In this document: one piece after another, positions 19 through 39,428 of the stretch
Layout of the letters: each line of letters begins with the position of its first letter
Numbering within the stretch: position 1 is the first letter of the stretch
Origin: Bugula neritina
Lineage: Eukaryota; Animalia; Bryozoa
NCBI GenBank assembly: GCA_964035545.1
Contig: OZ037767.1
Span: 20,352,628 to 20,416,627 of the forward strand
Direction of reading: 5' to 3'
Length of the DNA: 64,000 nucleotides
Translations under genes and position numbers: made by a program
The notes under the pieces: generated by a model
The model's input: the letters and a program-made list of their open reading frames with translations, nothing else
Told to the model about the DNA's origin: nothing
The model's database searches: none

Positions 19-3000
19 TGGTTTCTGTGATGACTCATGGCTGTTAGACTCCAGCGCTTTTGACTCACAAGATGTGGACATGGAAACAGAGGACCTTTCT
101 GTAAGTACCTGCTCTACCTGTACTGTTACCTGCTCTGCCTGTACCATTACCTGCTCTACCTGTACTATTACCTGCTCTGCCTGTACTATTACCTGCTCTG
201 CCTGTACTATTACCTGCTCTACTTCTCACAACCTGGTGTCTTCTTACAAGTGTAAACTGGTAGCTTGTAATAGCTCTCACTGCAGACAATATGATATAAA
301 CAATTAAAATATAAATCTCTGCTAATATAATAGTTTTTTAGGCGAATAATTATTTTACCTGCTACCTTCTAATTATAAAGTAGTGAATAATTCACAATCT
401 AAATCTAAATTAGGTAACTCTCTGAATAATGTTAGGTAAACTGTCAGTAGACTCAGTGGTAAGTGCTGGACAAAAACTGAAAATCCAAGTCCCTTCACCC
501 ATCAGTAGCCTAGTAGACTAGTTTCACCATCTACTTTCCTTGCTGCCCACCATTTCACGGGATAACTGGGTGTGAAGCTACAGTCATTAGTGACTTCAAG
601 TCACCATTTTTCATTATCAACAGTTTAAGCTGCCCTTGGGCATTTTTCTGGTCCTGCAATAAGTTATTTAATCGTGTTGAGGGCTTTTGTTGATGAAAGG
701 CTGGCCAGTTGGCTTGTTGATGCTATGAATGTCCTCTGAATACCCTCACAGTTAAGATAAGGCTTGGCAACGATTTTGTTTGTCAAGGTAACAACGGGTT
801 GGGTTTTTGAATTGAAGATAATTGCTGATGCAGCTAAGTGTATTGTTACCATGACGAATATCCAAACATTCCCCTACTGGTAATTGGTTGGATAAGGAAA
901 CCTTAGCTACAGTTATTTCAATTTATTTGTTAGTCTAAACAAAAGCTGAGTAAACAGCAATGTTTACATTAAACTGATGAAATGGGCGAGTATTGAGGGC
1001 CACGACTGCTTTGAATGTCATGAAGTCACACAAATACCTGTTGCTGTGTCAATAAGGCAGATCCAGCAACTTACTGTATGGATTTGTATAGCATAAACTC
1101 TGCTAATTGGCAAAAATCCGACGTTAAACACTTTAAAATGCTGCCTAATGAGTTGCCAAACTCACATTCGAAGCTGTCAAGTCAACTAATATGCTGTCAG
1201 TTTCTCTCATCAACAACCACCTGCCACTCTAGTGTTTAGAGCATTTAGCTCCAATTCTCACTCACTTTCATTCTCCGAGTTTCCAAACCTGATTCATAGC
1301 ATTATTTTAAAAACTTTGCTTAACCTATTGTTGTGTACAGCATTGTTGATCAGCTGTTGCTGACTCTCTCTCTCTCTTGCTGCCTATAGCTTGACCTCAA
1401 CGACATGTCCACCAACCGGTACAAGGAGGAGTTCTGTGAGGAGTCGCTGATAGGCTCTGGGGAGTTTGGTAACGTCTACAAGTGCGTCAACAAGCTAGAC
1501 GGCTGCGTCTACGCCATCAAGAGGTCCCGAGAGCCCATCACTGGCAAGGCTGTGGCGTAAGTCTGTATAATATAGCACTAGAAGTTGTCTTTCCCCATAA
1601 AGCTGTTTATATAAGATAAGTAGTTCCCTTCTCTAGAGATCAAAGTGTTCCTTGTAGGAGAGTGTCTAGGAATGAGGTGTACGCAGAGGCAGTGCTGGGT
1701 AAACACCCGCACGTGGTGAGGTATCACTCCGCCTGGGCTGAGGGCGGACATCTCTTCATACAGAATGAGTTCTGTAACGGCGGGAGTCTGGCGGAGGAAA
1801 TAGCGACACACCAGAGGCGAGGCACTCGGTTCACGGAGGTGGAGTTGAAGGAAGTGCTGAGACAGGTGGCTTACGGGCTGAAGTATGTGCACTGTCTGCT
1901 GCTAGCACACCTGGACATCAAACCAGGTGAGTGAGTGTACTATTACTAGTACTAGTAGTACTAGTACTACTGCTACTACTAGTAGTAGTAGTAGTTTAGT
2001 AACTACCACTACTATACAAGTAGTTGTAGTCTTCCATTAGGGTATCACTTGATGCTTTGTTGTGATAGATTCTGTAACGTGTATTGCTATTATCTTGTCT
2101 ATGTCAGACAAAGCAGGCCCTTTGTTAGCAGGTGTCCTGGAATATAATTTGATTATGTAACAAGTTTTATTCAAGTAACTGCTCTGTCTATTTATTCTGT
2201 CAACACTATCACATGTCCAGCTGTTTTCTCTCCCTCCTCACCACTCTAAGCAAATAGACTTTCTCAAAATCCTGCTAAATCAGTTTTAATTAGCATTTAA
2301 AATAATATTTAAGTGTTATCATTCTAATCTCCTGCTGGGATGCTGCCTTAACCTGACTACACAAACAGTGTATTACATATTACACATTACGTATATTACA
2401 TTATATATTAGGCTACACACTAAGTATACTACATTATATATTACACAGTGTGCTGTTGGTTGCAGGTAACATTTTCATTCAGTACAATCAGATGCTCACC
2501 CAGTCACCAGAGTCTGGAATTGAAGAAGACATCAACGAGGGAAGTGAAGAAGACGAACTTACAGATCAAGTGACCTATAAAATAGGTGAGGCAGCGTCTC
2601 ACGTCTCTTCTGTCGGCCAAACTGTCACATCTCTCTCTGTCACATCACCTGCTCTCTGTCACATCACTTGCTCTCATTGTCACATCACCTCTCTCTCTGT
2701 CACATCTCTCTGTCACACCACCTTCTCTCTCTGTCACATCACCTGCTCTCGCTGTCACACCACCTTCTCTCTGTCACATCACCTGCTCTCTCTGTCATAT
2801 CTCTCTGTCCCACCACCTTTTCTCTCTGTCACATCTCTGTCGCATCACCTCTCTCTGTCACACCACCTGCTCTCTCTTGTTACATTACCTTCTCTCTCTT
2901 GTTACATCTCTCTCTGTCACACCACCTTCTCTCTCCGTCACATCACCTGCTCTCTGTCACATTACCTCCTCTCTCTTGTTACATTACCATTAACTGACTG

Positions 3001-6000
3001 TATTGCTATGATTTTTAAGGTGATTTCGGGCACGTTACTCAGATATTTGCCCCTCAAGACATGGAGGAGGGTGACTGCAGGTACCTGCCCAAGGAGATCC
3101 TTGGAGATGATCACAGTCACCTCTGCAAGGCTGACATATTCGCCCTCGGCCTCACCATCTACCAGTGTGTAAGTTATCTCACCATATACCAGTGTGTAAG
3201 TTCTCTCACCATCTACCAGTGTGTAAGTTATCTCACCATATACCAATGTGTAAGTTCTCTCACCATATACCAGTGTGTAAGTTCTCTCACCATATACCAG
3301 TGTGTAAGTTCTCTCACCATATACCAGTGTGTAAGTTCTCTCACCATCTACCAGTGTGTAAGTTCCCTCACCATCTACCAGTGTGTAAGTTATCTTACCA
3401 TCTACCAGTGTGTAAGTTATCTCACCATATACCAGTGTGTAAGTTATCTCACCATATACCAGTGTGTAAGTTCTCTCACCATCTACCAGTGTGTAAGTTA
3501 TCTCACCATATACCAATGTGTAAGTTCTCTCACCATATACCAGTGTGTAAGTTCTCTCACCATATACCAGTGTGTAAGTTATCTCACCATCTACCAGTGT
3601 GTAAGTTCTCTCACCATCTACCAGTGTGTAAGTTCTCTCACCATCTACCAGTGTGTAAGTTCTCTCACCATATACCAGTGTGTAAGTTATCTCACCATCT
3701 ACCAGTGTGTAAGTTCTCTCACCATCTACCAGTGTGTAAGTTCTCTCACCATCTACCAGTGTGTAAGTTCTCTCACCATATACCAGTGTGTAAGTTCTCT
3801 CACCATCTACCAGTGTGTAAGTTCTCTCACCATCTACCAGTGTGTAAGTTATCTCACCATATACCAGTGTGTAAGTTCTCTCACCATCTACCAGTGTGTA
3901 AGTTATCTCACCATATACCAATGTGTAAGTTCTCTCACCATATACCAGTGTGTAAGTTCTCTCACCATATACCAGTGTGTAAGTTCTCTCACCATATACC
4001 AGTGTGTAAGTTCTCTCACCATCTACCAGTGTGTAAGTTCCCTCACCATCTACCAGTGTGTAAGTTATCTTACCATCTACCAGTGTGTAAGTTATCTCAC
4101 CATATACCAGTGTGTAAGTTATCTCACCATATACCAGTGTGTAAGTTCTCTCACCATCTACCAGTGTGTAAGTTATCTCACCATATACCAATGTGTAAGT
4201 TCTCTCACCATATACCAGTGTGTAAGTTCTCTCACCATATACCAGTGTGTAAGTTATCTCACCATCTACCAGTGTGTAAGTTCTCTCACCATCTACCAGT
4301 GTGTAAGTTCTCTCACCATCTACCAGTGTGTAAGTTCTCTCACCATATACCAGTGTGTAAGTTATCTCACCATCTACCAGTGTGTAAGTTCTCTCACCAT
4401 CTACCAGTGTGTAAGTTCTCTCACCATCTACCAGTGTGTAAGTTCTCTCACCATATACCAGTGTGTAAGTTCTCTCACCATATACCAGTGTGTAAGTTCT
4501 CTCACCATCTACCAGTGTGTAAGTTCCCTCACCATATACCAGTGTGTAAGTTCTCTCACCATCTACCAGTGTGTAAGTTCCCTCACCATCTACCAGTGTG
4601 TAAGTTCCCTCACCATCTACCAGTGTGTAAGTTCTCTCACCATCTACCAGTGTGTAAGTTCTCTCACCATCTACCAGTGTGTAAGTTCTCTCACCATCTA
4701 CCAGTGTGTAAGTTATCTCACCATATACCAGTGTGTAAGTTCTCTCACCATCTACCAGTGTGTAAGTTCTCTCACCATCTACCAGTGTGTAAGTTCCCTC
4801 ACCATCTACCAGTGTGTAAGTTCCCTCACCATCTACCAGTGTGTAAGTTCTCTCACCATCTACCAGTGTGTAAGTTCTCTCACCATCTACCAGTGTGTAA
4901 GTTCTCTCACCATCTACCAGTGTGTAAGTTATCTCACCATATACCAGTGTGTAAGTTCTCTCACCATCTACCAGTGTGTAAGTTCTCTCACCATCTACCA
5001 GTGTGTAAGTTATCTCACCATATACCAGTGTGTAAGTTCTCTCACCATCTACCAGTGTGTAAGTTATCTCACCATATACCAGTGTGTAAGTTCTCTCACC
5101 ATCTACCAGTGTGTAAGTTCTCTCACCATCTACCAGTGTGTAAGTTATCTCACCATATACCAGTGTGTAAGTTCTCTCACCATCTACCAGTGTGTAAGTT
5201 ATCTCACCATATACCAGTGTGTAAGTTCTCTCACCATCTACCAGTGTGTAAGTTCTCTCACCATCTACCAGTGTGTAAGTTCCCTCACCATCTACCAGTG
5301 TGTAAGTTCCCTCACCATCTACCAGTGTGTAAGTTCTCTCACCATCTACCAGTGTGTAAGTTCTCTCACCATCTACCAGTGTGTAAGTTCTCTCACCATC
5401 TACCAGTGTGTAAGTTATCTCACCATATACCAGTGTGTAAGTTCTCTCACCATCTACCAGTGTGTAAGTTCTCTCACCATCTACCAGTGTGTAAGTTCCC
5501 TCACCATCTACCAGTGTGTAAGTTCCCTCACCATCTACCAGTGTGTAAGTTCTCTCACCATCTACCAGTGTGTAAGTTCTCTCACCATCTACCAGTGTGT
5601 AAGTTCTCTCACCATCTACCAGTGTGTAAGTTATCTCACCATATACCAGTGTGTAAGTTCTCTCACCATCTACCAGTGTGTAAGTTCTCTCACCATCTAC
5701 CAGTGTGTAAGTTCTCTCACCATCTACCAGTGTGTAAGTTCTCTCACCATCTACCAGTGTGTAAGTTCTCTCACCATCTACCAGTGTGTAAGTTATCTCA
5801 CCATATACCAGTGTGTAAGTTCTCTCACCATCTACCAGTGTGTAAGTTCTCTCACCATCTACCAGTGTGTAAGTTCCCTCACCATCTACCAGTGTGTAAG
5901 TTCCCTCACCATCTACCAGTGTGTAAGTTCTCTCACCATCTACCAGTGTGTAAGTTCCCTCACCATCTACCAGTGTGTAAGTTCCCTCACCATCTACCAG

Positions 6001-6733
6001 TGTGTAAGTTCTCTCACTGTATTTACTCCCTCCTTTGTAGACGGTGTATTCCTGCCTGTTCAGGCTGTAACTGTGTGTTTGTGTTGTTTCAGGCAACTCT
6101 GCTGGAACTACCAAAGAACGGCGCCGAGTGGCACAAGATAAGGTCTGGCAACCTGCCGTACATGAAAGGCTACTCCGTGACCTTCAACAACCTCGTCAAG
6201 GTTGGTCTTCTATATATGTGTGTACTCTGTGTATAGCCTGTGTACTCTGTGTATAGCCTGTGTACTCTGTGTATAGCCTGTGTACTCTGTGTATAGCCTG
6301 TGTACTCTATGTATAGTCTGTGAACTCTATGTATAGCCTGTGTACTCTGTATCTAGAGCATGGTACACCCAGATCCTGCCACCAGACCAACTGCTGCTCT
6401 CATCTCTTCACACCCACAACTCTGTCCTGAACATCTACGGAGTCGTCTAGAGTTAGCGAGAGCCCTTCACGAGGAGCGAGTTAAGAATCAGAGGCTATCT
6501 GAGTGAGTAGATGTGATAGTATTCGTATTATTAGTGTAGTTGAAGTTGAAAATAACATGTTCCCCGGTGGCTATGCTGTGATACAATAACTCCTCGTTTC
6601 CTGTAGACAACTGAAAGCAGTGACGGAGAATGCAGAGCAACGGATCTTCAATGGCATCTCCCGGCCGACCACCCGAGCCAGCCGTCTCATTGGACTGCAA
6701 GTCAACCGCAGCAAAAGTCTCACCAACTTCTAA
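19..6733 (+). CDS. WEE1: Wee1 kinase, 3' part (5' exons lie upstream of the window). Exons 19-100, 1390-1556, 1658-1926, 2466-2585, 3020-3168, 6093-6200, 6357-6502, 6607-6733
   Basis: All introns are GT-AG with consistent phases. The spliced product has Wee1 signatures: [111 protein letters not shown], a coiled-coil tail and C-terminal [15 protein letters not shown]. Confidence 0.96.
106..221 (+). repeat. 21-bp minisatellite (tacctgctctgcctgtactat), about 5.5 copies, abutting a Wee1 donor site
   Basis: Visible tandem unit starting inside GTAAGTACCT at 101; explains ORFs 65-289 and 74-307. Confidence 0.9.
2622..2990 (+). repeat. Degenerate pyrimidine-rich minisatellite (ctgtcacatcacctgctctct-like) in a Wee1 intron
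   Basis: Recurring tgtcac/ctctct units; explains the SHHLLS-type ORFs. Confidence 0.85.
3151..6017 (+). repeat. 27-bp minisatellite, 106 copies (CTCACCATMTACCARTGT GTAAGT TMY), built from the Wee1 exon/intron junction
   Basis: GTAAGT recurs every 27 nt from 3169 to 6004; the first copy is the real exon end (LTIYQC|gtaagt). Confidence 0.98.
6217..6356 (+). repeat. 20-bp minisatellite (cctgtgtactctgtgtatag), about 7 copies, whose last copy is the Wee1 acceptor
   Basis: AG ends at 6236, 6256, 6276, 6296, 6316, 6336 and 6356. Confidence 0.92.

Positions 6734-13142: not shown

Positions 13143-39428
<26,286 letters not shown>

Follow-up and report, generated by a model that had tools for sequence, protein, structure and literature searches.

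The wee1 gene of Bugula neritina carries, in the intron that follows the exon at 3020-3168, a 27-nt minisatellite whose first unit spans the exon-intron boundary and which repeats the 5' splice site 106 times; the RNA of both spliced assemblies that we compared uses the first of these donor copies only, as read from contigs of a lineage whose array is apparently shorter. The array is real, large and ordinary in kind, standing out by its size and, weakly, by variation in its exon-derived part that is synonymous only. We consider it probable that it is an exon-boundary minisatellite acting effectively as intron filler, with normal Wee1 made from the first donor. All coordinates refer to the window, the whole 64,000-nt stretch of contig OZ037767.1 that was analysed, and the wee1 features lie on its plus strand.

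The host gene had been named Wee1 in a preliminary description of this DNA, and homology searches agree, with human WEE1 and its homologues as best matches and collinear exons; the gene is single-copy in the assembly. Splice signals and phases give a consistent chain of eight exons, with the stop ending at 6733. The gene begins before the window, whose positions 1-100 are the predicted 3' part of an upstream exon (GTAAGT donor at 101, phase chain). There follow the exon with the kinase domain start (1390-1556; Pfam Pkinase positions 3-33, splice signals and phase), the exon reaching to the catalytic loop HLDIKP (1658-1926; Pfam Pkinase 46-126, phmmer hits), the exon with the acidic kinase insert (2466-2585), whose 3' end is joined to 3020 in the RNA contigs described below, and the exon from DFG to helix αF (3020-3168), which contributes its final 18 nt to the first repeat unit. 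Beyond the array lie the next exon, of phase 0 (6093-6200), and two exons predicted from splice signals and the phase chain, with the kinase domain end (6357-6502) and the last coding sequence with the stop (6607-6733).

Exons were searched one by one and their adjacency taken from the homologue coordinates. Human WEE1 was the best match of exon 3020-3168, residues 1-46 of which align to chain 2z2w_A 173-217 (E 3.8e-11), and residues 5-25 of exon 6093-6200 align to 225-245 of the same chain, so that a junction from the first donor to 6093 adds nothing to the protein relative to this chain. Among the best 150 phmmer hits, 64 homologues were usable, and the gap between the matches of the two exons was 0 in 57 of them and 1-5 in the other 7, with a nine-residue step at the junction in none. 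Of all the donor copies, the first is the only one with which the kinase stays collinear with these 64 homologues and with human WEE1. Four other wee1 introns also have tandem repeats of their own (106-222, 1937-1995, 2381-2443, 2626-2988 and 6219-6350), which brings the introns with such repeats to five of the seven in the window; the repeats at 106 and 1937 start within about 10 nt of a donor, and the donor is not copied. The arrays listed make up about 12% of the window.

The minisatellite occupies 3151-6017 (TRF: period 27, 106.2 copies, 95% matches, no indels) and sits at a phase-0 exon end. Each unit consists of 18 exon-derived nt, GTAAGT and 3 further nt, and unit 1 (3151-3177) spans the real exon-intron boundary, with the RNA-supported donor at 3169 (3169-3174). 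The 106 GTAAGT motifs that had been described from 3169 to 6004 in steps of 27 nt were recovered by motif count, in exact 27-nt steps; the 105 downstream copies (3196-6009) are pseudo-sites of which no use was seen in RNA contigs, compared over the first three donor copies. The copies had also been called identical, which holds for the donor itself, the same from -3 to +7 in 106 of 106 copies, but not for whole units, which fall into 7 types with variable unit positions 3, 9, 15, 26 and 27; 69 of the 106 match the first unit over -18 to +6. The exon frame runs stop-free through the whole array, as had been stated, and reads VS[S/Y]LTIYQC. Retention of the whole intron (2,924 nt) is out of frame, with a first stop at 6139. 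An insert from later donors had been placed just after the DIFALG helix, without a premature stop; the absence of a stop stands, but the placement shifts, as we take LTIYQC to be the second half of helix αF itself, so that an array-derived insert would fall at the αF end. There it would presumably lengthen a spot of fixed length with a hydrophobic repeat and be more likely harmful than useful.

Use of the donors was read from four public assemblies (X1, X2, X7 and X12), which were compared over 2989-3258, that is, the exon and three donor copies; the acceptor side at 6093 was read from the loose-end letters of the contigs. X7 and X12 are spliced RNA, since both skip introns (the type of an assembly is otherwise a guess). 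X12 has a single contig (2,006 nt, depth 287), unbroken over 3018-3169. Its loose ends continue into the previous wee1 exon and into the exon at 6093, and array-derived contigs are absent from this assembly. X7 has a 735-nt contig at depth 85 with the same junction from the first donor to 6093. A path through a later donor would have to branch off at 3170 and come back in the final 18 bases of the exon, and the contig break expected from it is absent in both; a 27-nt ladder or junctions from later donors were likewise not found in the two assemblies, at contig level, where rare forms drop out. Beyond the junction the main X7 contig runs on for 29 letters and stops at the very point at which an unspliced path would merge at the acceptor. 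X7 also contains small array contigs of low depth, with array k-mers at about 6% of the level in DNA of the same sample, relative to exon depth. Given this contig end, pre-mRNA or DNA is the simplest and best explanation of the array k-mers, short of proof. We also considered that the CAG within each unit might serve as a 3-nt microexon, and rejected this on the lack of an extra codon in either RNA contig.

Both RNA assemblies come from a lineage about 5% diverged from the source of the window, with an array apparently much shorter than the 106-copy allele; over exon 3020-3168 the lineages show 8 differences, all at synonymous third positions. Three outcomes had been proposed for the array, namely faithful choice of one site, a ladder of isoforms, or tuning of Wee1 output by array length. 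The first is supported by both spliced assemblies, which run from the first donor to 6093; the ladder was not seen in them, at contig level. A junction 3168-6093 as the only one present had been named as the result that would refute the proposal, and it is the only one found at contig level in the shorter-array lineage.

Selection of the first donor can be pictured as commitment of the spliceosome to it after the 149-nt exon, where the outcome is shown and the mechanism is our conjecture: commitment could come about by pairing across the exon, by 5'-to-3' first-come selection during RNA synthesis, or by both, and the later donor copies would then be removed with the intron to give normal Wee1.

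The two edges of the array point to its origin. CTCAC stands at both (3151-3155 and 6013-6017), 18 nt before the donor and 9 nt after it, and the right-hand copy is the probable seed microhomology. It is followed by the unique rest of the intron with the acceptor CAG (6018-6092), so that with one unit the intron would measure 89 nt, near the 101-, 104- and 156-nt introns of the same gene. In an original intron of 89 nt the two CTCAC copies would have stood 27 nt apart, and slippage from one to the other probably started the array: the pair would let replication slip and duplicate the intervening 27 nt, after which slippage and unequal exchange would expand the array and copy blocks of units. 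Such blocks are present, as a shared-run comparison showed units 26-49 (3826-4473) to be an exact repeat of units 1-24 (3151-3798), and units 53-68 recur as 79-94. The longest shared run, 24 units, compares with a mean of 5.4 and a maximum of 11 after shuffling, and the recent 24-unit duplication begins at the exon-end unit 1. Block duplications of this kind are ordinary minisatellite turnover.

Arrays with repeated donor motifs occur elsewhere in the genome. Four GTAAGT at 27-nt spacing gave 539 matches genome-wide (103 of them in the wee1 array) versus 0 for the reversed pattern. Array starts numbered 79 versus 7 in the control at spacing 27 (about 56 separate loci) and 171 versus 14 at spacing 26, a count that includes 13-mers; at spacing 28 the pattern (523 versus 300 in the control) was swamped by 4-nt microsatellites. 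Genome-wide motif counts gave no preference for periods divisible by three, arrays of 26 nt being at least as common as those of 27 nt. The wee1 array is the largest of 61 arrays measured, the next having 55 to about 80 donor motifs, and none of the 60 other loci examined reaches 106 copies. Pfam confirmed an upstream exon in 2 of 20 candidates (Copine and Ndc80), and many of the other donor-motif arrays may be merely intronic repeats that contain the motif. At the Copine locus (L035, G000:C6:96460-100460, minus strand), the exon is followed by 27 units, in frame and stop-free, with the same 18+6+3 layout as in Wee1; at the Ndc80 locus (L058, G000:C1:34608786-34612786) the exon precedes five donor copies of 26 nt each, which are out of frame and contain stops. 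Nearly the same 26-nt GTAAGT unit is found at four separate loci (L055, L056, L057 and L059; G000:C1, 31.7-35.3 Mb), so some arrays form a dispersed family that did not grow from a local exon end. Two related 26-nt arrays lie nearly adjacent on opposite strands at G000:C3:118265-118433, as an inverted satellite pair. The window itself contains a 39-nt repeat with 10 copies directly after a minus-strand GTAAG donor-like motif (30854-31252), a 37-nt repeat with 2.4 copies, whose three GTAAGT closely follow another plus-strand GTAAGT (28428-28516), and a second 27-nt array of 30 copies (37368-38186), open in one plus-strand frame (ORF 37290-38183) and with 12 GTRAG motifs.

The open frame of the wee1 array is a coincidence of period and phase and not surprising, because stops are excluded from the exon part by its coding origin and 26-nt arrays are no rarer than 27-nt ones. 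By simple arithmetic, in which one in three periods is in frame, GTAAGT contains a stop in a single phase out of three and a last codon has to be open, the chance of an in-frame, stop-free array is roughly one in four or five.

The variation among units is less easily accounted for. Three variants fall within the 18 exon-derived nt, and each of them is synonymous, as against 11 of 54 possible changes (naive P 0.009, or about 0.015 once transition and transversion types are fixed, in a post hoc comparison of three variants), and over the whole unit 4 of 5 variants are synonymous (P 0.01); that GTAAGT itself is free of variants fits chance (P 0.25). Synonymous-only variation in the exon part is not what pure neutrality would lead one to expect. 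The pattern may be due, in descending order, to chance, to exchange of units with the coding exon end, or to some translation of later copies. An exchange of this kind would leave the array untranslated: contractions or unequal exchanges with a break in unit 1 would put a downstream unit at the exon end, and selection would then remove arrays with coding or donor-killing variants, or the variants would have begun as synonymous exon alleles. We regard this as possible if on balance doubtful, and it adds to the intron-filler explanation without excluding it. Besides the three synonymous variants it is favoured by the 24-unit block, which starts exactly at unit 1, and by the plentiful synonymous alleles seen in the third-position differences between lineages. 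It is weakened by the post hoc nature and small number of the variants, by the untouched GTAAGT that chance would give anyway, and by 23 other candidate arrays, in which a synonymous bias was not seen (6 of 19 variants versus 4.5 expected, in frames that were mostly guessed).

The length of the array was approached through DNA reads. X1 (source-like DNA) and X2 (diverged DNA, from the sample that also gave X7) each fall apart into repeat contigs at the array, which is therefore present in the reads and common to both lineages. In X1 the array k-mers are at high depth and amount to at least about 50 unit-equivalents, the contigs shown summing to about 51; the depth integral of the array in X2 is about 15% of that in X1, where depth is no copy number and the lineages differ. 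The X1 data support a large array, and the exact figure of 106 rests on the assembly. The X1 contig graph differs from the k-mer graph predicted from the assembled array, and copy number is not fixed by it. A real array whose length was inflated in assembly, for example by a doubled 25-unit block, would account for this mismatch, for the sum of about 51 and for the exact internal repeats of 24 and 16 units. We hold such inflation to be quite unlikely: the X1 figure is a lower bound, drawn from part of the contigs, with variant paths dropped and two alleles averaged, and duplicated blocks are normal in minisatellite turnover.

The same reads show further differences from the assembly. At position 3036 all four runs, X1 included, read C where the assembly has T, a synonymous change that could reflect heterozygosity, a difference between individuals or a mistake in the assembly. 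Runs X2-X19, under the same organism label, share 8-12% of sampled words with the window, unlike X1; this low sharing, together with the 8 third-position differences in one exon, suggests that one name covers several cryptic lineages.

A rival reading is leaky splicing in which donor choice strays to the second or third copy, as described for human IFI6 and CBS (PMC1557585); in wee1 it would yield minor in-frame forms with 9 or 18 extra residues, as tolerated noise or under weak selection. It would fit the identity of all copies at -3 to +7, the open frame, which would let such mRNAs escape decay, the synonymous-only exon part and the low-depth array contigs of X7. The spliced contigs are, however, unbroken where the path would leave or rejoin, the end of the X7 contig fits an unspliced path merging at the acceptor, no homologue has the insert and the 23 other arrays lack a synonymous bias, and we judge it very unlikely. 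There is a slim chance that animals with the long allele splice from later donors to a measurable extent, giving in-frame Wee1 with 9n additional residues at the αF end, or that array length sets Wee1 output; if so, selection on the later-donor or length-set products would explain the synonymous-only variation. An effect of array length on the output of intact Wee1, whether by slowed splicing, by retention with decay or by U1 loading, agrees with the growth of the intron from about 89 to 2,924 nt, with out-of-frame retention and with a copy number that apparently differs between lineages (by depth), but such arrays occur in unrelated genes, and we hold such an effect to be scarcely probable.

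The intron-filler reading places wee1 among known systems. Minisatellites whose first unit lies across an exon-intron boundary have been described in F7, IFI6, CBS, LMNB2 and PDGF; F7, LMNB2 and PDGF use the first site only, whereas IFI6 and CBS also use two more (PMC1557585). The wee1 array resembles the 37-bp VNTR of human F7 intron 7 and its kin (IFI6/6-16, CBS intron 13, LMNB2, PDGF) in its boundary-spanning first monomer, in the donor repeated within the intron and in the use of the most upstream site. It differs in copy number, with 106 copies compared with 5-9 in F7, 25 pseudo-sites in IFI6, 15-20 in CBS, 10-15 in LMNB2 and 16-18 in PDGF (PMC1557585), in the exon-derived part of the unit (18 nt compared with 4 nt in F7), and in being in frame and stop-free, in an invertebrate with short introns.

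The 'mirages' of amphioxus, length-unstable arrays that leave splicing undisturbed (PMC3087553), are similar in another way. Those of Adh3 and the globins BflGb6 and BflGb9 (PMC3087553) share with wee1 a tandem duplication at the boundary in a marine invertebrate with several such loci per genome, as well as concerted turnover, normal splicing and, apparently (by depth in wee1), length variation. Their copies are far fewer, globin mirages having 3-6 units of 150-160 bp (PMC3087553), and the wee1 array, from a different animal lineage, probably arose independently of them. Of the features of the F7 type and the mirages, wee1 shows a boundary-spanning unit, a repeated donor, splicing from the upstream site (at contig level, in the shorter-array lineage) and block turnover, and a literature search found no precedent closer than these minisatellites. 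Donor motifs within an intron also recall the ratchet points of recursive splicing. This was rejected, as an AG directly before GT is lacking (unit columns 16-20 are TGTGT in all copies); the intron is, moreover, only 2.9 kb long.

With about four times the largest copy number among the examples of PMC1557585 and PMC3087553, the wee1 array is an extreme natural case of repeated donors. In a gene with short introns, a mechanism that pairs splice sites across the intron should prefer the final copy, which lies 89 nt from the acceptor, but splicing starts from the first, at any rate on the shorter allele. Most tests of how a choice is made among identical 5' splice sites, whether by scanning, by exon definition or by nearness to the acceptor, have relied on mammalian minigenes. 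The many arrays of this kind in a single genome would provide natural replicates for deep RNA reads, and repeated donors of this sort can also mislead gene annotation and the mapping of reads.
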